Part shown: one piece after another, positions 11,852 to 63,042 of the stretch
How positions within the stretch are numbered: position 1 is the stretch's first letter
Layout: the number at the start of each line of letters is the position of its first letter
Source: Phaeosaccion multiseriatum
Taxonomy: Eukaryota > Protista > Ochrophyta, other classes
Assembly (NCBI GenBank): GCA_965112735.1
Contig: OZ218961.1
Span: 2,418,001-2,482,000 of the forward strand
DNA: 64,000 nt
Direction: 5' to 3'
Notes under the pieces: generated by a model
What the model was told of the DNA's origin: nothing
The model's database searches: none
What the model saw: the letters and a program-made list of their open reading frames with translations, nothing else
Made by a program: the position numbers and the translations under genes

Positions 11852-12386
11852 CTCAGAATATGTCAGGGATCGATACTAGTACCAAGCCCAGGAGGGAATG
11901 TACGCGTTCGCCCATGCAGAGGGCTCCCTCACCACCAGCCACTCCCACCAAGACACTCCCCAGCGAGTAAGTCAGCCAGCTACCTCCTCAGGCACGTCGC
12001 TGCTGCCAGGGGCTAACTCCTCCACCCCCTCCTCCTTCCTTCCTTCCTTCATCCACAGCTGGGGCCCGCATTGCGGCGCATTGCGGGAGGGCGAGGGAGC
12101 AGCGGACCCACCACGGCCACCGAACCAGGCGGGTTCTGGCTGCTGTACGCACAGGCCAGGAGAACGCGAATAGTTGTATTCGTCCTGTAGGTGAGTAAAA
12201 AAAGAGATACATCGGTCCCATCATATCTTCTCTCTCCTCACTCTCCTCTCTTTTATATATATATTTATATAGATATAATTCTGATCCATCATATTTTCTC
12301 TCCTCACTCTCCTCTCTTTGTATGTATGTATTATATATATATATCATATATATATATATCATATATATATATTTCATATATATATA

Positions 12387-15300
12387 CTTCTGACCCATCA
12401 TATCTTCTCTATATGTACAAAGCTCTGCTTTGGTGTCTCTCTCCCCCTCCCTCTCTCCTTCTCAATCCCTCTCCTTTCCTCTCTTTCTATGCTCCTAAGG
12501 TTATGCGACACTGGCTGCACAGCATGTCCCGGAGCTGCTCCACCTCAAAGGGCTTGGACAGCACGGCCGAGAAGCCGTTCTCCGCTGCCGTCCTTTGTGT
12601 CATGCCCTCGTCCGCCGTCATGGCTATGATGGGGAGGCGCACACCTCCTTCGCGCCTCCTTAGCTCGCTCGCAATCTCACTGCCGGTGCTAAACTGCATC
12701 CGATTGTCCATGAGCACCACATCGAACAACTCGTCCAACAGCAGCCCCGGGTAGTGTTGCAGCACCTCCCTCCCGTCCTCCAGCATGGTCACCTTGTCAT
12801 CAGCACATCACAACACTCCACTGTTAGTAACAATACAGTTTGTTGTCAGCATCACAACACAACACTCCACTGTTCGTAACAATACTGTCAGGGACAGGCG
12901 CAAATATATACACGGTAGATGGCAACTGACGGGTCAAACAATACACAAACTGAAACTCACCTTGTGCACCCCAAGGGCCTCGAGCATGGCCTGCCCCACG
13001 AAGTGATTGAGGAGGTCATCGTCCACAAACAGCACGCGCAGCTCCGCCAGCAGAGAAGGCCCCCCATCCCCCCCCACCGCCGCCATGCGCACCTCTTCTA
13101 TTACCCTCCTTCCGTCTCCCCCCCGCTGCTGCTGCTGCTGGCTCTTGCTCTTGCTCTTGCTCTCACCCTCCTCCTCCTCCTCCTCCTCCTCCTCCTCCTC
13201 CTCCTCCTCCTCCTCCTCCTCCTCCTCCTCCTCCTCCTCCTCCTCCTCCTCAGTCATGGTGATCGTGGTCCTTGGTATCGTAGTTGCAGTCTGAACCACT
13301 GTCGTGAAGGAGAAGACCGTCCCGCTCTGCCCGTCCGTGCGGTTCCGCAGGGTCAGTTTCCCGCCCATACCCGTACACATGGCCTCGCTGATGTCCAGGC
13401 CGATGCCTGAGCTACGGAGGACGGCGCAGGGCCGTGGTGAGGCAGTCCTTGTGGACAAGCGCTGTTGGTCTTCGCTGTCGCTCTCGTTGTTGCTACTGCT
13501 GCTGCTGCTTCTGCTGCTGCTGCTGTTGCCCAGGGTCTCTCCACCACTGCCGCCACTGCTCGTATTGCCACCATCAATAGACCTCGACGACTCCCCACCC
13601 CCACCCCCTCCTGCCCTTCTCCGTGGCGCCCCGTCACTCCCGCTGCTTACAGTCGCCTCGTCAGTCCCCGTCTCCCTCCCGCTTGTGCCCCTGTCGCCAC
13701 CACCGCCTGTGATGGTGCTCTGCCCATTTCCATTGTCGTCAGAAGAAGGATGGTCCTCGCCTTGCGCCGTGTGGTGGTCTCCGCCTGGAGCGGGGCTCCC
13801 ACGCACACTTGCGGTTGCAGCAGCGGTGCGCGGGAAGATACGGTGGAGCCACGAGGAGCCCCGCCCCGCGCCCCCGGTGGACATGGAGGTAGACTCGTTT
13901 TCCGGGCGGCGGCGGGACCGAACGGGTCTGCGAGCACCTTCGAGACTAAAGCCGAGGCGAGTCCCCTTTTGTCCTTCCGCCTCCTTGTCGCTCTTGTCAT
14001 CACCCTCCAACCCAGTGCCGTTGTCGATGATGGTAATGCGCAGACTGAAGAGCGGAGTACAAGTAGACGAAGAAGCAGAAGAAAATGGACAAGGAGCAGG
14101 AGGAGCGGCAAGACGACCACGAGCGGTGCTGCGTCTCCTCCTCCTCCTCCTGCTGCTGCTGCTGCTGCCGCTCTGGCCTCCACCGCTGTGAGGAGGCTCG
14201 TGAGTTGAAGCATCAACATCGATAGCAGTGGTCCCTTCCCCTGCCCCTGCCCCTGTCCCTGTCCCTGCCACAGACGCCTCTCCCCCTCCTTCGCCCCGCC
14301 CGCTGTTGTCGCGCGTCACTTGGATAGTGATGCTCGGATCGAAGGGCAACGCCGCCTCTTGCCCCTCTTGCCCGCCCCTGCCCCTTGCCGCCGGGTGGGA
14401 GGCTTGGTCGAGGGTTCGGTACTCCCTGATGGCAATGGCCTTGACGCCGTTGGTGATGCCGTTGGCGCACACCTGCTTGTCGGGTCGTGAAGGGTGGCGG
14501 TAAGAGGCAAGCAACCAACAAAAGGGAAGCAATCAAGCAACCAAGCAGGCAAACAAGCAACAAGGAGAAAGAGGGGGAGGCAATCAAGTGAGCAAAGGAG
14601 CGGGCGCACTTGCACTTCACTTCACTAAAAACTGTCGGAGAGGGTACAGGCCCCCACTCGACACAAATCTTCCGTGACCCCGGGGGGAGGGGAAGGGAAA
14701 TGAGACAGACACACACGCAGCCTACCGCAACATCCCCCACTTGGCGGATACGCGCATACAACCAACTGCTGCTGCTCTTCTGCTGTAACTACTGCTCATT
14801 GCTACTGCTCTCTGCTACTGCTCTCTACTCCTGCTCCTGCCAACCGTTTTGGACACACACGCACCCACGCACGCACGCACGCACGCACCTGCATGACTCT
14901 TTTGTCGTCGAGCATCAAAGTCGGGGGCAAATCGTCAGCGATGTGGCACTGAAATGTGATGGATGTGTTCATGCCGCAGTGCTGACTCGCAATGCGGTCG
15001 AAGAAGTCTTTCAGGCACACAGTTGACAGCGACCGAAGCACCACCCCTTCCTCAATGGCCTTGGCGTCCAGGACATCTACACTTAGCATCACCTTTGGGT
15101 GAGTGTGTTGTGGCGCATTGGGGAGGCGAGGTGGGAAGGAGAGGGTGTCAAGTCCATCCTTCGACTGAAGGAGGGAGGGAGGAGAGAGGGAGGGGGAGAA
15201 CACGCACACATGCATACACACATACATACACACGCACCAGCTGCTTGGTAGACATGCGAACGCGCTCCACCCATACAAACGCCTGGGCGCAGGCCCGCTC

Positions 15301-18300
15301 CTCAGCCTCCGCAAGGGCCATCGCACTGGCACCCGCACTGGTCTCTTGAGACCCTCTGTTGGTCTCCAGTGCGGCAGTGTGCCTGGTGGTGCCGCTGCTC
15401 TCCTCTGCCCAGGAGGCGAGAGCGCCAAGAGCGGTGGTGATGGCGTGGAGAGGGTTGCGTACTTTGTGGCAGATTGTTTGTACGGCATCACGCGTCCTGA
15501 GGGTGTGGGGGGGGTGCGAGCACGTACGAAAGATGGGAGTGAGTTGGGTGTGGGGTTAGGAAAGGGTTAGGAGCAAGGAGAGGTATATATAACGCACTAG
15601 AGATCGGAAGAGGTCTAATGGCTATAGAATCGTCCGCTCCCTGCTGTACTACGTACGCACTTACCTTTCTGTGGCGGCCGTTTCGAGCTGAAGGGCCCGC
15701 TGCTGCTCCTCATGCTCCCTGAAGAGTGATCTTTGCAGCCACTCCCACCCCACTATGATGATTACCGACAGGACAGACCCGATCACGGAGCGGTACACGT
15801 AGCGGAGCCTACCGTCGCACACGCACGCAAGTATAGTAAGGATATGCACAGTCATATGGGGATAGGGATAGAGAATAGGGATATAGCGGCGGGGGGGAGG
15901 GGGGGATGCGACAACAAGCCACAAGGGCGGGTCATGGGTGGGGCAGATAAGAAAGAGGAGGGGAGGGGGGGGGGGAGAGAGACGCGGAGAAAGGGGGGGT
16001 GGGTGGGGTGGAGGGTGAGAGTGGGACAGGGGAATTCCAAGCCAAAGCTTACTTGACATGGTTTGGGGCGTTGTTCCGTCGTGTGGAGTTGAAGTACAGG
16101 TCTTGAGACAGATATTTCCTTGCGAAGGCCGCTGCCACGAACGAAGGAGTGTTCATGGACAAGCCGATGGCACTAAAGAGCATGAATCTGATCCCCTGGG
16201 GGGTCCTCAAACACTCGGCGGAGGTGGGCTGGTCGTAGTCGCAATAGTACGTCTGATTCCCCCAGGCCGAGAGGATAAAGGCGCTTGCGAGACTCCAGCT
16301 CCAGCAGCGCAGGAAGTAGAGGCGAAGACGCCAACGCTTGTCGGCCCGCCCGAGCTTCTCTCCCTCCGCCGTCGGCGACAGGAATATTCTGTTACGTTTA
16401 GTTTTCGATAAACAGGGGATGGGGGGAGGGGAAGGCGGCGCGGAGGGTTACACTTACATACATATGCACACATGCACACACGCACACATGCACACACGCA
16501 CACACGCACACATGCACACATGCACACACGCACACACGCACACATGCACACATGCACACATGCACACGCACACATGCACACATGCACACATGCACACGCA
16601 CACACACACACAACGACACACACACACCACCACCTACCTTGCACAGAGATAGAGCACGGCCCCGAAGGCCACGGCCGGCCCTTCAATGAAGTTCCCTCGG
16701 TAGTCGTACTTCGCACCGCCGTTGTAGAGCCGTTGGTACACCAAGGGCCACCACGCGTTGGCGTTGAGCAGCACCAGCACGACCGGGATGATGGCTTGTG
16801 ATTGCAAGTGAAGCCACACCAAGTATCTATCTTCCTCGTCGGAGCGGAATACGAACCCCAGCAGCACGCCGCATACCCTTGTGGCGGTCCTGACAAGACG
16901 ATGCCTTCCCCAGCCCTTGCCGCCGCTCCCGCCGACGCCGCCCCCCTGCGCTGGTATGCCCCCTGCCCCCTGCTTCGCCTGCTGCCACTCTTCCTCCTTC
17001 CTCTCCTCCTGCCGCTCTGGCCAATGCAGAGGCGACTCCTGATACAGTAACTCACCCCCCCAACCTGCATCTACAGCGCTCCTCTGCACAGCACGAAGGG
17101 GAGATGACTGCAAGCCCACATCGACGCTTCCCCTCTCCATTTGATCATCCTCACCAGCGGACTGCAGCCCCTCCTCCCTCTCCATCGCGGACAAAGACGA
17201 GGATGCGGCAGGAGCACGTACCGACAACAAAGCCACTGGAGCCCCCTGTCCCTTCGCCAAGTCAAGTTGCTTGCGTATGCACTGCTGGAGCAGCTGCAAG
17301 GAGTAGGGCTTCTCCAGCACGGCAGAGAAGGCCTCGTCGGTGATGAAGGCCCACTCCCTCCTCCTCCCTGCCTTGAGAGTGGCGGCCACGACGGGAATGC
17401 TCCTCACTCCCCAGCTGCGCAGTTGCCTACAAAGCCCAGTCTCTCCTTCAATGGCCACCGCCTGCTCCTGCTCAGCCTGCTGCTGCTGCTGCTGCTGCTC
17501 AGAAGACAGCACCCGCCCTTCTCTTTCTTCTTCTTGCTCTCGTCGCTGCTGCTCCTCTCCTCTGCTACTCACATGCACGAGGACGAGATCAAAAGCGGCC
17601 TCCAATCCTTGTCCCCGAGGGAAAGCCTGCAGCACCTCCGCACTGCTCTTGAACGCCGAAGTGGTAACCTCTAGTGCATGGAGCAGGCTCTGAGTCATGT
17701 CTCGCTCGAGGTCATCGGTACTGAGCAGCAGCACCCGCACACCCTCCAAGCTGCTTCTGCCAAACGGGTTGCCGGCTCTGCTGCTCCTACACATATCTCC
17801 TCGTCCTCCTCCTCCTCCTCCTCCTCCTCCTCCTCCTACTCGCCCCCCTCCTCCTCCTCCTCCTCCTCCTCCTCCTCCTCCTCCTCCGCCGCCGCCGCCG
17901 CCGCTGTTTCCACCACTCCAAGTGTTCCGTACGTCTGCGTCCAGCAAGTCCGAGACGAAGTCAAGCAGCTGCGAGGAAGCCGAGTCCAGCACCCGCACCC
18001 AATCGAAGAATCCGCCCCACATACCGCCTCTAGGGGAGGCGGGCGGGATCTTGACTGGAGGCAGCGGTAGTGGCCCGGCGGCTGGAGACAGGCCCCGCCG
18101 ATCCTGTGGCTGTTGTATCACCAACTGCTGCTGTCTCTGCTGTGACGCAATGAGGGCCCCAGTGAGAGCAAGCCGCGGCGAGGAAGTTCGGCTCCGTGGC
18201 GACTGCTTCTGCTTTGAGTCGAGCAGGAAGGGCAAAGACAGCCTCTGCAAGTGATGCACAGAGGCTGTGAAGGAGTGCAGCGCGTTTCGAAACTCGTGAC

Positions 18301-19545
18301 AGGCGTAGCGCAGAGTGCGAACCCGCCTCTCCGTCAGCTTCCTCGCCTCCTCCAACCGCCGCAACTTGTCGCTGTAGGCATGAAAGTAGGCCCTCCAGCG
18401 CACCCTCACAGTGACACCGAGCACGAGCATCAGTCCAAGGGTTGTCCAATTGAAGATAAGGGCGTCCAGGACAGTGTATGTGCCCCCGCCGAACCGCCGA
18501 GAGACATCGATAACCTGAATGCTTGTGAAGTAGGCCATGACCGCCCCGGTGACCACCAAGTAGGGGAGGTCAACCTTATGCATGTAGGCAAGGTGTGGTG
18601 GGGTGGGGATGAATGGGGGCGGGGTATGGCGAGGTAGGTGTTGGTTGCTTGTCTGCTCGTTTGCTTGCTTGTGCAGAGCGCACCGCACAGGACCGAGTAT
18701 GAATAGAGTTCTGACACTCGGATCCGAACAGGTAGAAGGCACCACCCCCGACTAGAAGTCTACCTCCCCCGACCTGCGTTGCTCACCTCCAGGCAAAACA
18801 CAAGAAATATGTAGATATTTGAGCTTCTAGGGGCGGTAAAGTCAACACAGCGAGCGTCGCCTGTGCACTTTTGGATGTCGAAGGCAATAGTCCACCCCAA
18901 GGCGAGGGCACTGCACAAGACGCCCCACCAGCTCACAAGGAAGCGAGTGAGCACGTGCTTCCCACCTAGCAATCGCAGGGACCCCGTGTACAGGGCTTGG
19001 AGTATAAGAAATCCCAGGATCACAGGCAGGGCCTGAGAGAGAGAGAGGAAGAGAACAAGAGGCACACACAAGGGCCGAAAAGGGAAGAGAGCAGCAGCAG
19101 CAGCAGCAGCAGCAGGAGGAGGAGGAGGAGGAAGAACATGAGCAAGGAGCAGCGCGGTGGCTAAGAGAAGAGAAGAGCATGCAGGGGGGCAAGAGGAGAG
19201 CGAGGCCTGCTTTTCTCATTTTCCTTCATCTGTCTACTTACCCTGAGGTACAGGTCCTGTCTTCTCACGGGGTCCGGGCGCACGAAATAAAACCACGTCC
19301 AGTGCATAAGGTTGTACCACGTGAGGGCCACCCAGGCTCCCCACTGCCTCCGCTGCATTGAAAAGTCGAGGTAGGCCCTCTCGTCCCTCGGATTGTGGAA
19401 GCGCAGGAAGGTCAGGGTTAGCAGCCGCAACCTCCCCCCTGTGAGCCACGTCATTTGCTGCTCCCTCATGAATGTACACCCTGAGGGTTAAGCACTGGAG
19501 CTCAGCTCATCGACTTTCGTGGGCCCACTGCAATGCGTGCGTGGA
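12387..19545. repeat. Left arm of a large inverted duplication (pairs with 21752-28992)
   Basis: Reverse-complement match from CTTCTGACCCATCATATC (12387) to ...CTGCAATGCGTGCG (~19541). The ORF track is mirrored, e.g. 14802..15491(-) and 25910..26599(+) give the same 229 aa. Confidence 0.97.
12487..19469 (-). CDS. Membrane hybrid histidine kinase, copy A (TM-HisKA-pseudoREC-TM-HisKA-HATPase_c-REC), spliced
   Basis: H-boxes [11 protein letters not shown] and [10 protein letters not shown]; N-box [18 protein letters not shown]; G1 [10 protein letters not shown]; G2 [17 protein letters not shown]; receiver LRVLFVDDD...[10 protein letters not shown]...PIIAMTAD...VLSKPF; hydrophobic exons; GT-AG introns. 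Start codon is tentative. Confidence 0.88.
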
Positions 19546-19635
19546 ATTTTTTGATTTTTTTTTTCCTTTTTCCGCAAAAATACACGCTGCGGAATCACAT
19601 TCACAGATGGCGGCGGAACGGGACCTTTTTTTTTT

Positions 19636-21557
19636 CCCTCCTACCAGGACGACTTCGTCCACCCCTGGCGCGGCAACCTCGCCGACTTCGAGCCCACTCT
19701 CGACACCTTCACCACCGACCTCGCCTCCATCGGCCTCACCCGCCGCACGGACAAGCAACGATACCTCCCCCCCCCGGGCCACCACGTCACCATGGAAGAG
19801 CGCGCATTTGTGGACCGCACTGGCGGCACCATCATCGAGGACGGCGGCTTGAGCATTGTCGGCCTTCCAGTCGGCCACGACGACTTCATCAGAGGTTACC
19901 TCTCCCAAATCATGGTGGACGGACCCGACAGACACGCCTTCCTTCACCTCGCCGAGCAGATCGCCCTCATGCAGGAGACACAACCCGCCCTCCTCCTGCT
20001 CACGAAGTCACTCTCGCCAAAACTCCAGCACTATCTGCGCGGTGCCGCCCCCGGCCAGACGACCAACACCATTGCCTCCCCCGGCGACGCCCTCAGCCTC
20101 GCCGTCGGAGAGGCCCTACTCCAACTCCCAGGAGCGGACACCATCGGAGACATCATCGCCAGCGCACCCTCGGACCGACTGTCGCACCTTCAGCTCGCCT
20201 CACACCAGCACCAACAGATGTTCCTTCCCCAGTCCCAAGGAGGTTGGGGCTCCCTCTCCCTCACCAACACCGCCATACCAGCCTACCTGGGCGCAGCCGC
20301 CGACACCCTCCAGTCAGTGATCACACCGGGAGCCATCTGGCCAGAGGCGGACCTACGCGACCTCGCCCCAGCCCTCCGCCAGAGTAGCTCCGTCCAGAAC
20401 ATCCTCACCACCATCCAGGCCGCCGCCGAAGACGGGACCCTCTCCCGACAAGACCTGGAGATGAATCTCCCCCTCCCCCTGGTCAACCTCGCGCTCACCT
20501 CAGCAGCGGACCGCCAACGAGCTGAGGACGCCTTCGACACCAGCCTCGCCCAGGGCAACTGGGCCCCGCAGCAGCAGACGCAGCGCGCCCTGCAGAGATG
20601 CCTAGCGCCGCAACGCCGGGACAAGTACCGCGCCTCACTGGACCGACTCCCCGACGACGCTGCTGCTGCCGATACCGGCATGGAGTCTCGCCGACAGGCC
20701 AAGTCTCGGCACCTGAGCCAGAGCAGCGACGGGGCCATGGGCTTCATCGCAACCTCACCTGGACAGGTCTCCATGCCGGCCCAAGACATGGTAGGGGCCC
20801 TACGACGCTCCCTCGGCATCAACTGCCTGTACAGCCCTGGGGAACCCGACGCACTAGTCTGCACCCGCTGCAACACACGCGCCGACTCCTCCCACGCCAT
20901 CCAGTGCCCCAACCAGAGCACTCTCTATCACACCGGGATGCTCTCCTCCATCGAGGACATGTTCAAGCAGAACTACGTCTCCCGCGTCGGACACGAGAGC
21001 TCGGAGCTCTTCAACCCCCCGCACAACATCGCCCGGACCTTCCGCATGGACGCCACCCTCCCCCGAGGCGCCCTCTCCGGAGCCCGCGACCCCACCTTTG
21101 CCCACCCGGCGCACATGCTAGACCTAACCCTGAGTAACAACCTCTGCAGGACGGCCTTGAATGTGCTCCGCACGGACATTAGACCGGGAGCGGCAGCCGC
21201 CAACAGCGAGACCCGCAAGGAGCGACATTACAGGGGCACCTACGACCGAGAGCGTGTTCGCCTCTCCACCTTCGCCATCGAGACCCACGGCCGACTCGGC
21301 GCACAGGCGCAATCGCTCCTGCACGCACTCGCCGAGCACGTGGTCACCCGCACTGGCCGCACGGGCTCCTCCACCACCAAGGGCCACGTCCTCACACGAC
21401 TACGCCGCCTCGTCAGCTGCAGCCACCAGATGTGGCTCTCGGAGCGGGAGCGCGCCTTCCTGGGTCGGCTCAACCGCGGAGCCGGCCCCGCACCCCCCCT
21501 CCCCGCCCTAGAGGGGGAGTAACCGGCCCCTCGAGGGCCCCGGAGACACAGCGACAC

Positions 21558-21559
<2 letters not shown>
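19636..21559 (+). mobile_element. 5'-truncated non-LTR retrotransposon with restriction-like endonuclease (CRE-like clade)
   Basis: YQDD at 19642-19653 is in frame with ORF 19792..21522, and there is no ATG between it and the upstream stop. Downstream: RT motif 6/7-like LASIGL...K and GLSIVGLPVG; LPQSQGGWG; CCHC knuckle CTRCNTRADSSHAIQC; endonuclease motifs RMD, LDLT, AAAANSETRKERHY and FAIETHGRLG. Short 3' UTR runs into (CA)n. Confidence 0.85.

Positions 21560-21623
<64 letters not shown>
21560..21623. repeat. (CA)n microsatellite at the 3' end of the retroelement
   Basis: About 32 perfect AC units starting ~38 bp after the ORF stop. Confidence 0.95.
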
Positions 21624-21625
<2 letters not shown>

Positions 21626-21751
21626 TCACACTTTCAGTTTCTTAGGTGATTCCTATTAAGTCAATAAAGTACCCCCTTCCCCCCCCCTTGCGCACACACT
21701 CACAATCACAATATCCCTCCCCTGCTGGGTACGATTGTATTTCTGACCGTC

Positions 21752-23460
21752 TCCCCGCACGTATTGCAGAGGGCGCACGAAAGTCGATGAGCTGAGCTCC
21801 AGTGCTTAACCCTCAGGGTGTACATTCATGAGGGAGCAGCAAATGACGTGGCTCACAGGGGGGAGGTTGCGGCTGCTAACCCTGACCTTCCTGCGCTTCC
21901 ACAGCCCGAGGGACGAGAGGGCCTACCTCGACTTTTCAATGCAGCGGAGGCAGTGGGGAGCCTGGGTAGCCCTCACGTGGTACAACCTTATGCACTGGAC
22001 GTGGTTTTATTTCGTGCGCCCGGACCCTGTGAGAAGACAGGACCTGTACCTCAGGGTAAGTAGACAGATGAAGGAAAATGAGAAAAGCAGGCCTCGCTCT
22101 CCTCTTGCCCCCCTGCATGCTCTTCTCTTCTCTTAGCCACCGCGCTGCTCCTTGCTCATGTTCTTCCTCCTCCTCCTCCTGCTGCTGCTGGTGCTGCTGC
22201 TGCTCTCTTCCCTTTTCGGCCCTTGTGTGTGCCTCTTGTTCTCTTCCCCTCTCTCTCTCAGGCCCTGCCTGTGATCCTGGGATTTCTCATACTCCAAGCC
22301 CTGTACACGGGGTCCCTGCGATTGCTAGGTGGGAAGCACGTGCTTACTCGCTTCCTTGTGAGCTGGTGGGGCGTCTTGTGCAGTGCCCTCGCCTTGGGGT
22401 GGACTATTGCCTTCGACATCCAAAAGTGCACAGGCGACGCTCGCTGTGTTGACTTTACCGCCCCTAGAAGCTCAAATATCTACATATTTCTTGTGTTTTG
22501 CCTGGAGGTGAGCAACGCAGGTCGGGGGAGGTAGACTACTAGTCGGGGGTGGTGCCTTCTACCTGTTCGGATCCGAGTGTCAGAACTCTATTCAGACTCG
22601 GTCCTGTGCGGTGCGCTCTGCACAAGCAAGCAAACGAGCAGACAACCAACACCTACCTCGCCATACCCCGCCCCCATTCATCCCCACCCCACCACACCTT
22701 GCATACATGCATAAGGTTGACCTCCCCTACTTGGTGGTCACCGGGGCGGTCATGGACTACTTCACAAGCATTCAGCTTATCGACGTCTCTCGGCGGTTCG
22801 GCGGGGGCGCATACACTGTCCTGGACGCGCTTATCTACAAGTGGACGAGCCTGGGACTGATGCTCGTGCTCGGTGTCACTGTGAGGGTGCGCTGGAGGGC
22901 CTACTTTCATGCCTACAGCGACAAGTTGCGGCGGTTGGAGGAGGCGAGGAAGCTGACGGAGAGGCGGGTTCGCACTCTGCGCTACGCCTGTCACGAGTTT
23001 CGAAACGCGCTGCACTCCTTCACAGCCTCTGTGCATCACTTGCAGAGGCTGTCTTTGCCTTTCCTGCTCGACTCAAAGCAGAAGCAGTCGCCACGGAGCC
23101 TGTCTTCCTCGCCGCGGCTTGCTCTCACTGGGGCCCTCATTGCGTCACAGCAGAGACAGCAGCAGTTGGTGATACAACAGCCACAGGATCGGCAGGGCCT
23201 GTCTCCAGCCGCCGGGCCACTACCGCTGCCTCCAGCCAAGACCCCGCCCGCCTCCCCTAGAGGCGGTATGTGGGGCGGATTCTTCGATTGGGTGCGGGTG
23301 CTGGACTCGGCTTCCTCGCAGCTGCTTGACTTCGTCTCGGACTTGCTGGACGCGGACGTACGGAACACTTGGAGTGGTGGAAACAGCGGCGGCGGCGGCG
23401 GCGGAGGAGGAGGAGGACGAGGAGGAGGAGGGGGAGGACGAGGAGGAGGAGGAGGAGGAG

Positions 23461-23502
<42 letters not shown>

Positions 23503-26500
23503 GAGGACGAGGAGGAGGAGGAGGACGAGGAGGACGAGGACGAGGAGGAGGACGAGGAGGAGGAGGAGGAGGAGGAGGAGGAGAGGGGCGAGTAGGAGGA
23601 GGAGGAGGAGGAGGACGAGGAGATATGTGTAGGAGCAGCAGAGCCGGCAACCCGTTTGGCAGAAGCAGCTTGGAGGGTGTGCGGGTGCTGCTGCTCAGTA
23701 CCGATGACCTCGAGCGAGACATGACTCAGAGCCTGCTCCATGCACTAGAGGTTACCACTTCGGCGTTCAAGAGCAGTGCGGAGGTGCTGCAGGCTTTCCC
23801 TCGGGGACAAGGATTGGAGGCCGCTTTTGATCTCGTCCTCGTGCATGTGAGCAGCAGAGGAGAGGAGCAGCGACGAGAGCAAGAAGATGAAAGAGAAGGG
23901 CGGGTGCTGTCTTCTGAGCAGCAGCAGCAGCAGCAGGCTGAGCAGGAGCAGGCGGTGGCCGTTGAAGGAGAGACTGGGCTTTGTAGGCAACTGCGCAGCT
24001 GGGGAGTGAGGAGCATTCCCGTCGTGGCCGCCACTCTCCGGGCAGGGAGGAGGAGGGAGTGGGCCTTCATCACCGACGAGGCCTTCTCTGCCGTGCTGGA
24101 GAAGCCCTACTCCTTGCAGCTGCTCCAGCAGTGCATACGCAAGCAACTTGACTTGGCGAAGGGACAGGGGGCTCCAGTGGCTTTGTTGTCGGTACGTGCT
24201 CCTGCCGCATCCTCGTCTTTGTCCGCGATGGAGAGGGAGGAGGGGCTGCAGTCCGCTGGTGAGGATGATCAAATGGAGAGGGGAAGCATCGATGTGGGCT
24301 TGCAGTCATCCCCCCTTCGTGCTGTGCAGAGGAGCGCTGTAGATGCAGGTTGGGGGGGTGAGTTACTGTATCAGGAGTCGCCTCTGCATTCGCCAGAGCG
24401 GCAGGAGGAGAGGAAGGAGGAAGAGTGGCAGCAGGCGAAGCAGGGGGCAGGGGGCATACCAGCGCAGGGGGGCGGCGTCGGCGGGAGAGGCGGCAAGGGC
24501 TGGGGAAGGCATCGTCTTGTCAGGACCGCCACAAGGGTATGCGGCGTGCTGCTGGGGTTCGTATTCCCCTCCGACGAGGAAGATAGATACTTGGTGTGGC
24601 TTCACTTGCAATCACAAGCCATCATCCCGGTCGTGCTGGTGCTGCTCAACGCCAACGCGTGGTGGCCCTTGGTGTACCAACGGCTCTACAACGGCGGTGC
24701 GAAGTACGACTACCGAGGGAACTTCATTGAAGGGCCGGCCGTGGCCTTCGGGGCCGTGCTCTATCTCTGTGCAAGGTAGGTGGTGGTGTGTGTGTGTGTC
24801 GTTGTGTGTGTGTGCATGTGTGCATGTGTGCATGTGTGCATGTGTGCGTGTGTGCGTGTGTGCATGTGTGCATGTGTGCATGTGTGCATGTGTGCATGTG
24901 TGCATGTGTGCGTGTGTGCGTGTGTGCATGTGTGCATATGTATGTAAGTGTAACCCTCCGCCCCGCCTCCCCCCCCCCCCCCCCAACCTGTTGAACGAAA
25001 ACTAAACCCAACAGATTATTTCTGTCGCCGACGGCGGAGGGAGAGAAGCTCGGGCGGGCCGACAAGCGTTGGCGTCTTCGCCTCTACTTCCTGCGCTGCT
25101 GGAGCTGGAGTCTTGCAAGCGCCTTTATCCTCTCGGCCTGGGGGAATCAGACGTACTATTGCGACTACGACCAGCCCACCTCCGCCGAGTGTTTGAAGGG
25201 GCCCCAGGGGGTGAAATTCATGCTGTATAGTGCCATCGGCTTGTCCATGAACACTCCTTCGTTCCTGGCAGCGGCGTTCGCAAGGGCGTATCTGTCTCAA
25301 GACCTGTACTTCAACTCCACCCGACGGAACGACGCCCCAAACCATGTCAAGTAAGCTTTGGCTTGGAATTCCCCTGTCCCACTCTCACCCTCCACCCCAC
25401 CCACCCCCCCGTTCTCCGCGTCTCTCTCCCCCCCCCCCCCCCTCCTCTTTCTATCTGCCCCACCCATGACCCGCCCTTGTGGCTTGTTGCCGCATCCCCC
25501 CCTCCCCCCCGCCGCTATATCCCATTTCTCTATCCCTATCCCCATATGACTGTGCATATCCTTACTATACTTGCGTGCGTGTGCGACGGTAGGCTCCGCT
25601 ACGCGTATCCCTCCGTGACCTCGTGGGTCCTGTCGGTAATCATCATAGTGGGGTGGGAGTGGCTGCAAAGATCACTCTTCAGGGAGCATGAGGAGCAGCA
25701 GCGGGCCCTTCAGCTTGAAACGGCCGCCACAGAAAGGTAAGTGCGTACGTAGTACAGCAGGGAGCGGACGATTCTATAGCCATTAGACCTCTTCCGATCT
25801 CTAGTGCGTTATATATACCTCTCCTTGCTCCTAACCCTTTCCTAACCCCACACCCAACTCACTCCCATCTTTCGTACGTGCTCGCACCCCCCCCACACCC
25901 TCAGGACGCGTGATGCCGTACAAACAATCTGCCACAAAGTACGCAACCCTCTCCACGCCATCACCACCGCTCTTGGCGCTCTCGCCTCCTGGGCAGAGGA
26001 GAGCAGCGGCACCACCAGGCACACTGCCGCACTGGAGACCAACAGAGGGTCTCAAGAGACCAGTGCGGGTGCCAGTGCGATGGCCCTTGCGGAGGCTGAG
26101 GAGCGGGCCTGCGCCCAGGCGTTTGTATGGGTGGAGCGCGTTCGCATGTCTACCAAGCAGCTGGTGCGTGTGTATGTATGTGTGTATGCATGTGTGCGTG
26201 TTCTCCCCCTCCCTCTCTCCTCCCTCCCTCCTTCAGTCGAAGGATGGACTTGACACCCTCTCCTTCCCACCTCGCCTCCCCAATGCGCCACAACACACTC
26301 ACCCAAAGGTGATGCTAAGTGTAGATGTCCTGGACGCCAAGGCCATTGAGGAAGGGGTGGTGCTTCGGTCGCTGTCAACTGTGTGCCTGAAAGACTTCTT
26401 CGACCGCATTGCGAGTCAGCACTGCGGCATGAACACATCCATCACATTTCAGTGCCACATCGCTGACGATTTGCCCCCGACTTTGATGCTCGACGACAAA

Positions 26501-28223
26501 AGAGTCATGCAGGTGCGTGCGTGCGTGCGTGCGTGGGTGCGTGTGTGTCCAAAACGGTTGGCAGGAGCAGGAGTAGAGAGCAGTAGCAGAGAGCAGTAGC
26601 AATGAGCAGTAGCAGAAGCCAGTAGTACCAGCAGAAGAGCAGCAGCAGTTGGTTGTATGCGCGTATCCGCCAAGTGGGGGATGTTGCGGTAGGCTGCGTG
26701 TGTGTCTGTCTCATTTCCCTTCCCCTCCCCCCGGGGTCACGGAAGATTAGTGTCGAGTGGGGGCCTGTACCCTCTCCGACAGTTTTTAGTGAAGTGAAGT
26801 GCAAGTGCGCCCGCTCCTTTGCTCACTTGATTGCCTCCCCCTCTTTCTCCTTGTTGCTTGTTTGCCTGCTTGGTTGCTTGATTGCTTCCCTTTTGTTGGT
26901 TGCTTGCCTCTTACCGCCACCCTTCACGACCCGACAAGCAGGTGTGCGCCAACGGCATCACCAACGGCGTCAAGGCCATTGCCATCAGGGAGTACCGAAC
27001 CCTCGACCAAGTCTCCCACCCGGCGGCAAGGGGCAGGGGCGGGCAAGAGGGGCAAGAGGCGGCGTTGCCCTTCGATCCGAGTATCACTATCCAAGTGACG
27101 CGCGACAACAGCGGGCAGGGCGAAGGAGGGAGAGAGGCGTCTGAGGCAGGGACAGGGACAGGGGCAGGGGCAGGGGAAGGGACCACTGCTATCGATGTTG
27201 ATGCTTCAACTCACGAGCCTCCTCACAGCGGTGGAGGCCAGAGCGGCAGCAGCAGCAGCAGCAGGAGGAGGAGGAGACGCAGCACCGCTCGTGGTCGTCT
27301 TGCCGCTCCTCCTGCTCCTCGTCCATTTTCTTCTGCTTCTTCGTCTACTTGTACTCCGCCCTTCAGTCTGCGCATTACCATCGTCGACAACGGCACTGGG
27401 TTGGAGGGTGATGACAAGAGCGACAAGGAGGCGGAAGGACAAAAGGGGACTCGCCTCGGCTTTAGTCTCGAAGGTGCTCGCAGATCCCTTCGGTCCCGCC
27501 GCCGCCCGGAAAACGAGTCTACCTCCATGTCCACCGGGGGCGCGGGGCGGGGCCCCTCGTCACTCCACCGTATCTTCCCGCGCACCGCTGCTGCAACCGC
27601 AAGTGTGCGTGGGAGCCCCGCACCAGGCGGAGACCGCCACACGGCGCAAGGCGAGGACCATCCTTCTTCTGACGACAATGGAAATGGGCAGAGCACCATC
27701 ACAGGCGGTGGTGGCGACAGGGGCACAAGCGGGAGGGAGACGGGGACTGACGAGGCGACTGTAAGCAGCGGGAGTGACGGGGCGCAACGGAGAAGGGCAG
27801 GGGGGGGGGGTGGGGGTGGCGGGTCGTCGAGGTCTATTAATGGTGGCAATACGAGCAGTGGCGGCAGTGGTGGAGAGACCCTGAGCAACAGCAGAAGCAG
27901 CAGCAGCAGTAGCAACAACGAGAGCGACAGCGAAGACCAACAGCGCTTGTCCACAAGGACTGCCTCACCACGGTCCTCCGCCGTCCTCCGTAGCTCAGGC
28001 ATCGGCCTGGACATCAGCGAGGCCATGTGTACGGGTATGGGCGGGAAACTGACCCTGCGGAACCGCACGGACGGGCAGAGCGGGGCGGTCTTCTCCTTCA
28101 CGACGGTGGTTCAGACTGCAACTACGATACCAAGGACCACGATCACCGTGACTGAGGAGGAGGAGGAGGAGGAGGAGGAGGAGGAGGAGGAGGAGGAGGG
28201 TGAGAGCAAGAGCAAGAGCAAGA

Positions 28224-28257
<34 letters not shown>

Positions 28258-28992
28258 GGGGGGAGACGGTAGGAGAAGAATAGAAGAGGTGCGCATGGCG
28301 GCGGTGGGGGGGGATGGGGGGCCTTCTCTGGCGGAGCTGCGCGTGCTGTTTGTGGACGATGACCTCCTCAATCACTTCGTAGGGCAGGCCATGCTCGAAG
28401 CCCTTGGGGTGCACAAGGTGAGTTTCAGTTTGTGTATTGTTTGACCCGTCAGTTGCCATCTACCGTGTATATATTTGCGCCTGTCCCCTGACAGTATTGT
28501 TACGAACAGTGGAGTGTTGTGTTGTGATGCTGACAACAAACTGTATTGTTACTAACAGTGGAGTGTTGTGATGTGCTGATGACAAGGTGACCATGCTGGA
28601 GGACGGGAGGGAGGTGCTGCAACACTACCCGGGGCTGCTGTTGGACGAGTTGTTCGATGCGGTGCTCATGGACAATCGGATGCAGTTTAGCACCGGCAGT
28701 GAGATTGCGAGCGAGCTAAGGAGGCGCGAAGGAGGTGTGCGCCTCCCCATCATAGCCATGACGGCGGACGACGGCATGACACAAAGGACGGCAGCGGAGA
28801 ACGGCTTCTCGGCCGTGCTGTCCAAGCCCTTTGAGGTGGAGCAGCTCCGGGACATGCTGTGCAGCCAGTGTCGCATAACCTTAGGAGCATAGAAAGAGAG
28901 GAAAGGAGAGGGATTGAGCAGGAGAGAGGGAGGGGGAGAGAGACACCAAAGCAGAGCTTTGTACATATAGAGAAGATATGATGGGTCAGAAG
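21752..28992. repeat. Right arm of the large inverted duplication
   Basis: Reverse complement of 12387-19545, with scattered substitutions and microsatellite length differences; ends ...ATGGGTCAGAAG before (TA)n. Confidence 0.97.
21828..28892 (+). CDS. Membrane hybrid histidine kinase, copy B, spliced
   Basis: Approximate exons: 21828-22055, 22262-22507, ~22716-24776, ~25015-25350, ~25593-25736, 25905-26163 ([20 protein letters not shown]..., not shown in the ORF track), ~26309-26512, ~26942-28417, 28587-28892. Same motifs as copy A. Confidence 0.88.
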
Positions 28993-29003
28993 AAAAAAAA
29001 GAA

Positions 29004-29008
<5 letters not shown>

Positions 29009-29069
<61 letters not shown>
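29009..29069. repeat. (TA)n microsatellite at the outer edge of the right arm
   Basis: About 30 TA units. A degenerate (TA)n also abuts the left arm at ~12332-12386. Confidence 0.95.
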
Positions 29070-29073
<4 letters not shown>

Positions 29074-29408
29074 AAACATACTGACCCCCCAGCCAGCATG
29101 ACGCCGTGCAGAAGGCACTCGTAACGCTGATGAAGGAAAAGGGCCTTGGCCCTGGCAAGGGCCACCATTGACATACTACACGGGATTCCTCTTCGCTCAT
29201 GGCATGGTGCACCGCCCCTCAGAATCCCGTCAGGGGTCGACTAAGCTACGACTACTTGTTGTGCTGTGCCTGTATACCCCACCCCGGAAGCCCTCGGCCT
29301 CTATCCATCGGGACTGAGCACACCCAATGCCTCGCCAAGTCCTCTCGAGTTAACTCTCCTGATTGGCCTCAACTTGTCTCAGCACCGCTCCTTGCGCCTC
29401 TCCCTCTC

Positions 29409-30118
29409 TCCTCCTCCTCCTCCTCCTCCTCCTCCTCCTCCTCCTCCTCCTCCTCCTCCTCCTCCTCCTCCTCCTCCTCCTCCTCCTCCTCCTCCTCCTC
29501 CTCCTCCTCCTCCTCCTCCTCCTCCTCCTCCTCCTCCTCCTCCTCCTCCTCCTCCTCCTCCTCCTCCTCCTCCTCCTCCTCCTCCTCCTCCTCCTCCTCC
29601 TCCTCCTCCTCCTCCTCCTCCTCCTCCTCCTCCTCCTCCTCCTCCTCCTCCTCCTCCTCCTCCTCCTCCTCCTCCTCCTCCTCCTCCTTCTTCTTCTTCT
29701 TCTTCTTCTTCTTCTTCTTCTTCTTCTTCTTCTTCTTCTTCTTCTTCTTCTTCTTCTTCTTCTTCTTCTTCTTCTTCTTCTTCTTCTTCTTCTTCTTCTT
29801 CTTCTTCTTCTTCTTCTTCTTCTTCTTCTTCTTCTTCTTCTTCTTCTTCTTCTTCTTCTTCTTCTTCTTCTTCTTCTTCTTCTTCTTCTTCTTCTTCTTC
29901 TTCTTCTTCTTCTTCTTCTTCTTCTTCTTCTTCTTCTTCTTCTTCTTCTTCTTCTTCTTCTTCTTCTTCTTCTTCTTCTTCTTCTTCTTCTTCTTCTTCT
30001 TCTTCTTCTTCTTCTTCTTCTTCTTCTTCTTCTTCTTCTTCTTCTTCTTCTTCTTCTTCTTCTTCTTCTTCTTCTTCTTCTTCTTCTTCTTCTTCTTCTT
30101 GACTTCTTCTTCTTCTTC
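29409..30118. repeat. Compound (CCT)~93(CTT)~138 trinucleotide tract
   Basis: Uninterrupted CCT from ~29409 to 29687, then CTT to 30100, one GAC interruption and a few more TTC units. Counts estimated from length. Confidence 0.97.
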
Positions 30119-31069: not shown

Positions 31070-32432
31070 TTACAACATGTCGCGGTCGCCGTTGCTGCCC
31101 TGCGAGTGGCTTGGCCGCTGCCCGCCTTGAAAGAGCCCCTCGGACAGTGCTCCTCCTCGGGGTGAAGACACTGCAAACGCCTCCTCCAGGGCCTCCTCCT
31201 TTTGTTGCACACGCGCAGCACACACACACACATCAACACACACACGTGGGGGAGAGGAGGGACGAAGCAGTGAGCTGAACATGCCTTGCTTGACAAGCCC
31301 CGGAGATGCTTGACATCTGACATGCATTGCTTGACAAGAGACATGCCTTGCTTGACAATGGGACAAAGAGGCTTCTCACACCCTCCCCGCACCCCCACCC
31401 ATTCCCGAGGGTGAGGTGAGGTGAGGTGAGGTGAGGTGAGGTGAGGGACGCATACGTATTTCTCTCACCGCTTTCGCAAAGCCGATGAAGATCTGCTCCA
31501 ACGAGGATTGGTTGACGCTGTAGTCCCAAATGCCGCACTCAGTCTTGGCGCCTTCGATGCTTTCGAACACCGTCGCAAGGCTGGTCCCACGCCTGGCCAC
31601 ACGTACGGAGGGGAGTAACGGAAACGCGCGTGGGTGCGTGCGTGTGGGGTGGGGTGGGTGCATGAGAAAGTCAGCTCCTTCTATACGTCGCAACGTCGTT
31701 CTTGCTCCGTTAACGGAGCCTCCATCATGCATTCACCACGACGGAGCAGACTCAATGGGCCGCCCCCACCCCCAACAAGGGGAAGACGTGGGAAGGAAAT
31801 AAAACGAAAAAGAGGTCCCCTCTCCCCCTCGGCCTCATTTCCACCTCACGATCAGTAGATCGATATGAACACAAAAGAAAAGACAGACAGAAATATATGT
31901 AGAAAAATGATATAAATGGAAGGAAGGAAGGAAGGAAGGGAAGGATTCCCCTCCCCTCCACTCCTCCCCTCCTCCCCTGCCCTCCTTCATTCCACTCACC
32001 CCAGCAGCGAGAACTTGACCATCGTCCGGTGCCTCTCCGTGAGCTCCGCCCCAAGCCCAGCCATGAGGGCGAGCACGGCACTCATTCGCTGCGGGGGACA
32101 GCGCACCTCGATGGTGTAACCGCCGCCGAAGCGGGTTTTGAGGTGCTGGCAGCTGCCAAGACAGCGCATCTTGCCGCTCACCATAATGCCGACTCGGTGA
32201 CACAAGGCCTCGCACTCCTGCGCCGAGTTGGGTAAGGCAAGGGAGAAGGAGGAGGGACCCAATTTTTAATAAGTTAATCGAAAAAAGAGGTACGAGAGAG
32301 AGGCAGGAGAGAGGTTGGATCAGCAAAATGAGGGTTGGGGCTTGTAAGAATGCCTTGCCATCAGTTGCCATCAGTGGAGTATCTTTGGCGCGGTTGAGGT
32401 TGAGGATAGGAAAACACTTGAGGAAATGAATA

Positions 32433-32464
<32 letters not shown>

Positions 32465-34466
32465 CCTTCCCTTCTTCCTTTCCTTTCTTCCTTTCCTTCG
32501 TGCCTTCCATCCCTCCTACCTTCCTTCCTTTCCTTTCTTCCTTCCTCCCTTCCTTTGTTCCTTCCTACCTCCCTCCCTTCCTTCCTTCCTTCCTGCTTGC
32601 CTTTCCTTCCTTCCTTCCTTCCTTCCTTCCTGCCTTTCTTTCCCTCCTTCCTTCCTTCCTTCCTTCCTGCTTGCCTTTCCCTCCTTCCTTCCTTCCTTCC
32701 TTCCTTCCTGCTTGCCTTTCCCTCCTTCCTTCCTTCCTTCCTTCCTTCCTTCCTTCCTTCCTTCCTGCCTGCCTTTCCCTCCTTCCCTACCTCCATTGAA
32801 TGCGTGGTGAGGATGATGCTGCGCGCAGAGGACACTTGCGCGATGACCTGCTTTGCATCAACGGATGGGGAGGGGGACAGAACGGTAAAGAGAGAGGCAA
32901 GGCAGAGCCAGACACACACCCGCCAAGATATATATATATATATGTGTGTGTATATGAGAAGCGAGGAAAGGGCGAGAGAAAGAGAGAGAGTGTGCGTGTG
33001 CGTAGTGTATTTGTGAGGTGACCAACAACGAGTTGCCAAGAAGCGGACTTGGAATGATCCGATTACTTCGAGCTTCGCACCTTCCACATTCTCCGTCTCG
33101 CGGCAGGGTCCATCCCTGAAATTGAGCGTCCAATGAGGGTCCAAGCAGCAGGAGGGACGCAAAGAGCAGGCGGAGAGAGAGAGAGTAGAGATGGAGGAGA
33201 GATTCAGAGAGAGGAGTGGACGGGGAAATGGATGGAAGGGCTGGGAGGGACACAAGGCGGAGCTGACAACACACACAGCCAAGTACAGACTTTATCGCAC
33301 TTTACATACATCGAAGCACATTCATCTCTTCGTGGAAGGAAGTAAGCAAGGCAGGGAGCAGGCCAGCAAGCAAGTAAGACAACAGCCTCAAGAGAGTGCT
33401 TACTCTTGCCCTTGCCCTTGCCCTTGCTCTTGCACTTGCTCTTGCACTGCACCCCTCCCTCCCTTCCCTTCCCCTCCCTCCCTGTACATAAAGTGTATAC
33501 ATACCCGTGGAGGGTTCGTCGAGGAAGAGGACGAGCGGGTTGGCGATGAGGGCTGTCGAGCAGAGAAAAGGGCAGGTAGGCACACGGGGAAGGGCGGAGG
33601 CAGGGAAGCAGAGAGAGAGTGAGTGAGAGAGTGAGTGAGTGGAGGAGCGAGTGAGTGAGTGAGTGAGTGAGTGAGTGAGTGAGTGAGTGAGTAAGTGACT
33701 CAGGTTTGAGTCTCCGAGGGCGAGGGGCGGGGGGAGAAGTACTCCCTGGCGAGATGTCAATTCCCATATACCTGCCACCCGCAAACGTGAGTGAACGAAC
33801 GAACGACGCAGCGCCTTTGCTCGTGTCGAAAGGCTTTCTTCCTCTGCCTACCAAGGGGCACTTTCAAGAAAATGACGTCAAATCTCTGCAAGTCAAGTTC
33901 TCCATTGTTCCTGCTGTGAAACGGAACTCACTCACCGATGGCCAGCGAAAGCGCCCTCTTCTGTCCTCCCGAGTACGTGCCCGCCATTCGGTCGGCGCTG
34001 TCTGTGAGGCCCACCATGTGCAGCAGTGCCGCCACCGGATCATCCTGCCCTGCACCTGCTCCACGTCCCTCCTGTGAGTCAAGACCCTCACCACTGCCTT
34101 CTTCCTCATCTTCGTCGTCGTCTTCTCCTGCTGCTGTATCCCCAACCGCTGTAGCTCCCACTGCTATCCATGACCCTGCCATACGCCGCCGCCGTCGCAC
34201 CACCTCGGCCCAGGAAAAGCGGCCTCTCTTCCGCTGCTGTATCACCACCCCGCGCAGTCCACCGTAGAAGTCTAGGGTCTCTCTGCCCGTCATCCAGTCG
34301 AGAAGAGGATCGCTCTGTGGGCAGAAGCCGATCATCTTGTTCACCTCCACTGAGGCGATGGGGCGGCCTCCAATGAGGATCTGTCCGCTCGTGGGTGAGA
34401 GGTCTTTCGTGAGAACCTTTGTTGGGGTCGGCGTTGTGGTTGTGGTTGTGGTTGTGGTTGTGGTCG

Positions 34467-34497
<31 letters not shown>

Positions 34498-34506
34498 GGT
34501 TGTTGG

Positions 34507-34540
<34 letters not shown>

Positions 34541-34588
34541 GGTTGTGGTGGTGGTGACCGTTGTGTAATCCATTTGCACATGCGAAAC

Positions 34589-34619
<31 letters not shown>

Positions 34620-41459: not shown

Positions 41460-42664
41460 CACATGTAACGCCTCTTGACTTACTACTCACCGTATCGCGG
41501 GGGACGATTGTGTTCATTGAACGTGTCAAGCATGTAGTCCTGCAGAGTGCCACCCGACGGCTCGACACTCCCGAGAAAGGTCGAGGCATCCTTCAGCTCC
41601 ACATGCCCGGGGTTCTTTGACTTGGGGCCCTCCCCTAGATAGCTGCTCAGCAGAGAGGAGGGTGGAGCTCCTGCTGCTGCTCCTCCTCCTCCTGCTCCTC
41701 CTCCTCCTCCTGCTCCTGCTCCTCCTCCTGCTCCTCCTGCTCCTCCTGCTCCTCCCACCACATCATCAAAGGCGGCTTCTGCTGCCGACGGGGTTGCGTG
41801 TGTGTTGACATAGAGCACCTGCGACGGTCCTGTGTACTGCGAAGCGTCTAAGGTCAGTCGAGGCCCCGCCAGACCGGGGTCGATGGTCAAGATAAGCAGC
41901 ACCAATGCTACAAGACCCGCCGGCAAGAAGAGCTGAAAAAAGAGACTCTTAAGGTCCCTGAGAGCGACAATCTGCCGCTTCATCAGCAACAAGCGGATCT
42001 GGGCGGCGAAGGTCACTACCCCCAGGGTGGGCTGTGCCTTTGCTGCCCATGTTGGTGATACAGCAGCCGCAGCCTCGCCCTCAGAAGGCGCCGCTACCGC
42101 CGCTGCTTGGGGCCGCCTGTGACTCCCTTCATCTTTCTCTTCCTGTATCACCAATTGCGCACTGCTCCTCTCCACGAGCTCAATGCCGCCCTCATCATTG
42201 GCGACTGCTGTATCACTAACTCGCGCACATACCTCCCCTTGTGTGCCTTCATCCTGCCCCCCTCCTGCCACCCTGTGGTAGCGCTGCTGCCGCTGCCGCC
42301 GCCGCCTGCCCAGTTTCAGTTTCAGATTCCCCGTCCCATCCCCAACTCCTTCGCCGCTCCCCTCCTCCTCCTCCTCCTCCTCCTCCTGCTGCTGCTGCTT
42401 CTGCTGCTGCTGTTGCTGCTTCCCCTTGTTGGTCCTCTGCTTTACTTCATTCTCCGCGGTGTCCAAGTGTAAGAACACCTCCTCCAGAGAAGTTACAGAT
42501 ATTCCGTAACCGCCAATGCCCAGGGCCTCCTTGCTCCCCTCTCCTCCCCCCTCTAGCTGCCGGAACAGCCCGGAGAAGGAGCCGCTGCTCGAGAGTGGCA
42601 GCCTGCAGAGAGAGATAGAGAGAAGGAAGGAGACAGGGAGGCGGTACGTCTGTCTGTCTGTCTC

Positions 42665-42751
<87 letters not shown>

Positions 42752-42794
42752 GTCTGTCTGTCCGTCCGTCTGTCTCTCTGTCTGTCTCTCTCTC

Positions 42795-42883
<89 letters not shown>

Positions 42884-63011: not shown

Positions 63012-63042
<31 letters not shown>

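Follow-up and report, generated by a model that had tools for sequence, protein, structure and literature searches.

Can a histidine kinase distribute its working parts over two homologous modules of one chain, and would such modules then act as one signalling unit? This question is raised by a gene located in a 64,000-nucleotide stretch of the genome of the ochrophyte Phaeosaccion multiseriatum (GenBank assembly GCA_965112735.1, contig OZ218961.1, positions 2,418,001 to 2,482,000; hereafter, the window, in which all positions are counted), a GC-rich eukaryotic region in which introns are short and of the GT-AG type and microsatellites are abundant. A preliminary description, made from the sequence alone, had reported here a single spliced frame encoding two histidine kinase modules that appeared to have lost complementary parts. 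We assembled the gene model from the translations of each frame and from the splice-site sequences, and obtained one open frame with two modules that are homologous in BLASTP comparisons, so that the observation of a two-module, unevenly degenerate kinase frame is confirmed at the sequence level; the codon positions given for His251 (22992-22994), His535 (23844-23846) and His1015 (25933-25935) are all exact, and Asp1680 is encoded at 28671-28673. The domains follow each other in the order membrane block, DHp1 (with His-Glu), Gly/Arg tract, pseudo-receiver, linker, membrane block, DHp2 (with His-Lys), ATPase and true receiver. The gene itself constitutes one arm (21752-29054, plus strand) of a 7.2-kb inverted repeat arranged head-to-head. 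Our best explanation as a whole, that of an old tandem duplication resulting in two cooperating modules, is a tentative one, to which we would give slightly less than an even chance. The features on which the argument relies are the following.

21828..28892, plus strand: the whole two-module histidine kinase gene, with 9 exons, all introns GT-AG, 1752 amino acids and no internal stop
21828-22055, 22262-22507, 22716-24775, 25015-25350, 25593-25736, 25905-26163, 26309-26512, 26942-28417 and 28587-28892, plus strand: the exons of this gene, from frame-by-frame translation and splice-site sequences
21954..22889, plus strand: membrane block 1 (amino acids 43-216), with four strong and one weak hydrophobic segments in a Kyte-Doolittle scan and a loop carrying a Cys pair; homologous to membrane block 2
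22914..23357, plus strand: DHp1 (amino acids 225-372), with the H box CHEFRNALH, in which His251 is followed by Glu at H+1 and Asn at H+4
23370..23624, plus strand: Gly/Arg (RGG-like) tract (amino acids 377-461, 85 in all), a purine-rich triplet microsatellite occupying the expected ATPase site
23673..24149, plus strand: pseudo-receiver REC1 (amino acids 478-636), with the Asp pair, Thr598 and Lys621 retained and His535 (in FDLVLVH) in the phospho-acceptor slot
24162..24536, plus strand: low-complexity linker (amino acids 641-765) joining REC1 to membrane block 2, within exon 3 and open in both arms
24591..25665, plus strand: membrane block 2 (amino acids 784-981), spread across exons 3-5; homologous to membrane block 1
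25675..26350, plus strand: DHp2 (amino acids 985-1105), exons 5-7, with the H box CHKVRNPLH, in which His1015 is followed by Lys at H+1 and Asn at H+4
26351..28114, plus strand: ATPase (CA) domain of module 2 (amino acids 1106-1550), with the N box at 26504-26980 (spliced), G1 at 27374-27403 and G2 at 27989-28018
28340..28868, plus strand: intact receiver REC2 (amino acids 1626-1745), exons 8-9, with the Asp pair, Asp1680 (in FDAVLMD), Thr1710 and Lys1731
12321..19545, minus strand: second copy of the whole two-module gene, 1723 amino acids, with an intact frame and a protein 96.5% identical

In module 1, the part that is missing is the ATPase. The H box of DHp1 carries the His together with an acidic residue at H+1 and Asn at H+4 (His251-Glu-Phe-Arg-Asn), and the two helices of this domain are set apart by a 77-amino-acid loop rich in Ser, Pro and Gln. 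In comparison with the Pfam HisKA profile, DHp1 reached E=0.005 (17.3 bits, under the cut-off of 26.9), and in protein-language-model features, the DHp1 piece groups with HisKA clusters at 0.94. No HATPase_c match was found in module 1 with Pfam, and the interval between DHp1 and REC1 is low-complexity in all three frames, so there is no hidden ATPase in this interval; the earlier claim that module 1 has a poly-Gly/Arg tract in place of this domain is thus borne out. The tract differs from the remainder of the gene in its GC content at third codon positions (GC3), 0.05 as compared to about 0.73, and its counterpart in the other arm is shorter by 129 nt. Two other interpretations of the tract were rejected: an ATPase hidden in an alternative frame is ruled out, given that every frame is low-complexity, and an intron is unlikely because, among the in-frame GT...AG pairs that are present, no AG is preceded by a pyrimidine tract. 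Even if the tract were an intron, module 1 would be left without an ATPase. Just 3' of the gene, at about 29393-29990, there is a CT-rich microsatellite that is complementary to the repeat of the Gly/Arg tract.

The receiver of module 1 had been described as having its phospho-acceptor Asp replaced by His, and the alignment of the two receivers agrees with this: in BLASTP, REC1 and REC2 match with E=3e-5 and 26% identity, and His535 is placed opposite Asp1680, with the same His present in the other arm. REC1 also contains an acidic, Gln-rich insert of about 40 amino acids after strand 3. It matched no Pfam family, and no PDB sequence in a phmmer search; in protein-language-model features, it groups with Response_reg clusters at 0.94 (25/30 matches). 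An AF2 model of REC1 from the single sequence had a pLDDT of 46 and was set aside. Membrane block 1 matched no Pfam family either, and protein-language-model atlas features gave no lead on it. In both modules, a Cys pair is present in the loop between hydrophobic segments 3 and 4, in the form C-x6-C (amino acids 128-148, 22415-22477) and C-x10-C (amino acids 894-906, about 25160-25200), respectively. This loop is a candidate for the part of an unclassified sensor domain that faces outward and contacts a ligand.

Module 2 was described as containing an HATPase domain with N, G1 and G2 boxes and an intact receiver. The receiver is supported by the profile searches: REC2 matched Pfam Response_reg with E=4.5e-11 (43.3 bits, over the cut-off of 30.2), as well as the receivers of ArcB, BarA and LuxQ in NCBIfam. 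For the ATPase, the motifs are present, whereas the profile match is sub-threshold (HATPase_c, E=2.2e-5, 25.3 bits, cut-off 26.4) and covers the G2 half alone. The G2 box (SGIGLD) lies inside the stretch matched by Pfam and NCBIfam, where there are weak matches to TorS and ArcB, and the N box ([11 protein letters not shown]) and the G1 box (VDNGTGL) were identified by eye. The domain is broken up by low-complexity inserts of about 80 and 170 amino acids, and neither exon 7 nor exon 8 yielded a kinase or receiver match in a phmmer search of PDB. DHp2 matched HisKA with E=3.2e-4 (21.1 bits, under the cut-off of 26.9) and has a hairpin loop of about 45 amino acids; the residue at H+1 is Lys1016 in both arms, in place of an acidic one. 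Altogether, then, the profile scans recognized Response_reg in REC2 and none in REC1, and both HisKA domains and the HATPase_c domain of module 2 remained below the cut-off.

The two modules are homologous. In BLASTP, the membrane block together with DHp of module 1 matched its counterpart in module 2 with E=5e-7 and 23% identity, and given that the modules are only 23-26% identical, the duplication must be old. The alignment of the second DHp helices that had been noted previously is gap-free once DHp2 is spliced, whereas on their own the helices match weakly (E=1.0). The exon 6/7 splice rebuilds helix 2 of DHp2, which then aligns without gaps to the unspliced helix 2 of DHp1, and the exon 7/8 splice rebuilds the N box (RVMQ|[11 protein letters not shown]); because they restore domain motifs, both junctions are self-validating. 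Furthermore, the position of intron 3 is homologous to that of intron 1 in module 1 (after ...LYLCAR and ...LYLR, respectively), so that module 2 retains the exon layout of the ancestral gene, except that exon 1 of this layout has become joined to the receiver exon of module 1. The gene arose when a membrane hybrid histidine kinase was duplicated in tandem long ago and read-through linked the receiver exon of the first copy to the initial exon of the second.

How could such an assembly function? Mutations in four HisKA kinases have demonstrated that autophosphorylation depends on the acidic residue at H+1, which phosphatase activity can do without, and that phosphatase activity depends in turn on Thr or Asn at H+4 (PMC3510030); the requirement of an acidic H+1 for efficient autophosphorylation, on which the preliminary description relied, is therefore backed by published mutagenesis. 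Under this rule, DHp1 is fully configured and lacks an ATPase, whereas DHp2 has an ATPase together with a kinase-unfavourable Lys and a phosphatase-competent Asn. As the simplest interpretation, we propose that both modules operate as one signalling unit, in which the sole ATPase, that of module 2, would phosphorylate the sole canonically configured His, His251 of DHp1, with DHp1 and DHp2 brought together either intrachain, as a four-helix bundle, or between the chains of a dimer. From there, phosphate would move to Asp1680 of the terminal receiver; DHp2, where Asn at H+4 is kept, would mainly scaffold the ATPase and may serve as a phosphatase, and the pseudo-receiver, which is not phosphorylatable on Asp, might act in regulation or docking. 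Cross-module phosphorylation of His251 by the module 2 ATPase is a real possibility, if one that falls a little short of probable. Both hairpin loops are long, so that the intrachain and the dimer geometry are both possible, and a strictly intrachain DHp1-DHp2 bundle seems doubtful. The same applies to the strongest form of the proposal, that of an obligate single-chain asymmetric kinase with an intrachain bundle, in which the sole ATPase charges the only His of the opposite half that is competent, and which represents a lineage-restricted gene family of this alga whose relatives are not detectable in public data: we consider it rather unlikely.

Among the alternatives, the one that survives best is a conventional homodimer, in which each DHp domain pairs with its own kind in a second chain, module 2 is self-sufficient (its own ATPase phosphorylating His1015 despite the Lys, with transfer to Asp1680), and module 1 is accessory. 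The accessory role could be that of a second sensor input, of a phosphatase or of a His phosphotransfer station similar to Spo0B or ChpT, in which case module 1 would take the phosphate back from the receiver and hand it to a downstream regulator. DHp-only phosphotransferases of this kind, Spo0B and ChpT, do exist, and the known dual kinases Tco2 and DhkD are regarded as conventional kinases with multiple domains. DHp2 itself keeps the His, the Asn at H+4 and a Pro at H+5 and shows no amino-acid change between the arms, and hence may be self-sufficient; for the same reason, "complementary" is too strong a word for the loss of parts, although the loss is indeed uneven. Purifying selection on module 1 (see below) indicates that this module does something, as an accessory module would. 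On the opposite side, the acidic H+1 was needed in all four HisKA kinases assayed (PMC3510030) and module 2 has a Lys there, and the one canonical His-Glu, located in a module devoid of an ATPase, would be puzzling if no ATPase ever charged it. On balance, we regard the conventional homodimer as possible and yet unlikely.

A further question is whether the two modules form one polypeptide. Exon 3 is a single open stretch encompassing DHp1, REC1, the linker and the first helices of membrane block 2. Were the modules to be expressed from two transcription units, or from an internal promoter, module 2 would also, or only, be made alone, and the open linker would be a by-product of GC-rich, stop-poor DNA. 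The in-frame Met664 and Met678, located upstream of membrane block 2, could start such a module-2-only product. The linker has a GC content of 0.64, which is coding-like, compared to 0.43-0.61 in introns, and only 0.013 of the shuffles were free of in-frame stops, so that the linker is hardly open by chance (p=0.013); its codon periodicity, however, is weak (p=0.064), 3 of its 4 differences between the arms are amino-acid-changing, and another frame, overlapping the linker, is also open at 24343-25002. The linker was probably untranslated or intergenic DNA in the past. The stretch is contained in four sequencing runs from one study, none of which is recorded as RNA. Each of these runs (33-337 million letters) holds 0.66-0.70 of the sampled words from 23640-26200, where the share of exons is 0.73; the runs could be cDNA, or come from a slightly different strain, the library type not being recorded. 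The first stop of module 1, at 24777, is read only if intron 3 is retained, and therefore a module 1 product would extend into the first membrane helices of module 2. Intron 3 also holds a GT microsatellite (24801-24947). Finally, the segment copied in the inverted repeat extends from 76 nt 5' of the first ATG to about 100-160 nt 3' of the last stop and so encloses both modules, which were accordingly copied as one unit. With the features of the linker, the splice model and the repeat taken together, a single polypeptide made from the two modules appears probable, and separate transcription units are improbable.

The second copy of the gene allows the two arms to be compared. The arms are 96-97% identical in DNA and are separated by a 2.2-kb spacer (19546-21751). 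The exon model applies unchanged to the other arm, with sixteen splice sites identical except for one base in a pyrimidine tract, and the diagnostic motifs are retained there ([16 protein letters not shown] and CHKVRNPLH). Apart from the two arms, local tblastn of the window (with 24801-24947 masked) detected no kinase paralogue. All 10 indels between the arms that fall in exons are multiples of 3, unlike the eight in introns. Counts of silent and amino-acid changes, obtained by the Nei-Gojobori method, are as follows.

Module 1: omega 0.39, 16 of 36 changes silent, expected fraction 0.25, p=0.008
Module 1 without the Gly/Arg tract: 14 of 29 changes silent, expected fraction 0.25, p=0.005
Module 2: omega 0.69, 20 of 63 changes silent, expected fraction 0.24, p=0.10
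Whole gene: omega 0.56, 37 of 103 changes silent, expected fraction 0.24, p=0.006

The excess of silent changes implies that module 1 is not a decaying relic; by these counts, it is under purifying selection and is decaying no faster than module 2. The divergence of the arms is patchy, ranging from 0 to 8%: there are no differences over 25752-26500, which includes DHp2 along with introns, and 5-8% over 24776-25750, that is, intron 3 and the exons of membrane block 2. Membrane block 2 is the most diverged region between the arms, with dN 0.039, dS 0.058 and 15 amino-acid changes. This unevenness looks like gene conversion sparing the second sensor block or like diversification targeting it. That module 1 is a functionless relic of the duplication, kept as an N-terminal extension, or that the protein in its entirety is a scaffold devoid of catalytic activity, would fit the absence of an ATPase and an acceptor Asp from module 1, the unstable microsatellite that fills the gap and the heavy interruption of the module 2 ATPase, but is very improbable in view of the silent excess in module 1 (p=0.005-0.008) and its omega below that of module 2, the frame, splice sites and His-Glu-x-x-Asn that are intact in both arms, and the low identity of the modules, which implies that the frame of module 1 has been open for a long time.

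Several points weigh against the two-module cooperation that we prefer, in addition to the possible self-sufficiency of DHp2 and to the linker periodicity, linker changes, overlapping frame and run records given above. To our knowledge, there is no citable kinase with Lys at H+1 that has been assayed. The HisKA and HATPase_c matches fall below the Pfam cut-offs, and the inserts of ~80 and ~170 amino acids might inactivate the ATPase. A single chain requires an even number of helices in membrane block 2, and the count in the hydrophobicity scan is ambiguous. Most of the exon indels are located in triplet repeats, where multiples of 3 would be expected anyway, which makes them weaker evidence for a maintained frame. 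The patchy divergence suggests that the arms have exchanged sequence by gene conversion, and the two copies are therefore not fully independent witnesses. Lastly, searches of protein, metagenome and viral collections yielded no outside relatives by which conservation of the asymmetry could be judged.

In these searches, exon 3 had only low-complexity matches in a set of 5.8 billion proteins, and the piece comprising the membrane end and DHp1 had 0 matches at E<=0.001 in a phmmer search of 1.84 billion protein representatives, a database size at which only relatives above roughly 30% identity would pass. Among the JGI metagenome contigs, neither an exact 41-mer nor the two-module profile was matched; this profile had no matches in viral contigs either, and a look-up of the exact product found nothing. 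A full-text literature search for a pseudo-heterodimeric histidine kinase found none.

The surroundings of the gene in the window include several other features. The spacer between the arms contains an open reading frame (19792-21522, 576 amino acids) that matched no Pfam family and in which a knuckle-like motif, Cys-x2-Cys...His...Cys, can be seen by eye; it may be the tail of a retroelement, although its identification as a retrotransposon has no Pfam support. The introns of the minus-strand kinase copy carry long arrays whose period is 8 nt, interrupted by some steps of 12 nt, as found elsewhere in the window.

7206-7800, 16403-16673, 32417-32800, 35828-36188, 42610-42979 and 48995-49300: arrays with an 8-nt period
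3636-6185, plus strand: protein with ankyrin repeats and an IQ motif
33928-34785, minus strand: exon of an ABC-transporter ATPase
62799-63860, minus strand: exon encoding MutS domain V (E=1.8e-61)

Histidine kinases are normally symmetric homodimers that work asymmetrically, with one ATPase firing at a time, in cis or in trans. If the proposed cooperation of the modules holds, this gene would encode a natural protein in which kinase asymmetry is hard-wired into one chain. With one chargeable His, one ATPase and two sensor blocks, each step of the reaction could then be assigned to one half by point mutants, and the protein would show how a dual kinase integrates two membrane inputs. Among the dual kinases of eukaryotes, which are little understood, the gene represents an additional form that is embedded in the membrane and partly degenerate, and its two near-identical palindromic copies represent a built-in evolutionary control.

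Dual hybrid kinases have been described in several eukaryotes, namely, fungal group XII including Tco2 of Cryptococcus, DhkD of Dictyostelium, KniteHK1/2 of Klebsormidium and HK5 of Capsaspora; Tco2 is predicted to be cytosolic, with duplicated kinase and receiver domains, and in the amoebozoan DhkD, one single-pass helix precedes two kinase domains and two receiver domains (PMC6324907, PMC3783435, PMC13618441). What they share with the predicted product of the gene analyzed here is the presence, in a single polypeptide, of two modules that are kinase-like and two domains that are receiver-like. The likeness to these kinases is one of architecture as described. Tco2 and DhkD have two histidine kinase domains each, whereas in the present gene a multi-helix membrane block precedes each module, module 1 has no ATPase and has His in the Asp slot of its receiver, and module 2 has Lys at H+1. 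With one ATPase and one true receiver, the gene falls outside the strict definition of a dual kinase, which comprises two complete kinase domains and two receivers. Thus, the earlier statement that this architecture was not known among eukaryotic hybrid kinases has to be narrowed: dual kinases had already been described, and the novelty is the two membrane blocks plus the uneven loss of parts.

A parallel in layout, by analogy only, is provided by membrane adenylyl cyclases and other single-chain pseudo-heterodimers, in which a membrane block and a catalytic half are followed by another membrane block and another catalytic half, as a result of internal duplication, and only the pair of halves is expected to be competent. 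The block-half-block-half arrangement with diverged halves is the same as in the present gene. The fold and chemistry of the cyclases are unrelated, however, and intrachain pairing is proven there and is a hypothesis here. Spo0B and ChpT are DHp-type hairpins with a phosphorylatable His and no working ATPase of their own, and are charged by another domain, so that module 1 resembles them in having a hairpin His without its own ATPase; they differ from module 1, which has a membrane anchor and is joined to a complete kinase module, in being free-standing soluble proteins that obtain their phosphate from the Asp of a receiver. In pseudo-receivers, such as those of plant PRR/APRR proteins and subfamily-2 ethylene receptors, the receiver fold is kept, the acceptor Asp is replaced and the domain acts in regulation or docking. 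The replacement in these domains is usually Glu or another residue, whereas REC1 has His at this position and retains the Asp pair, Thr and Lys.

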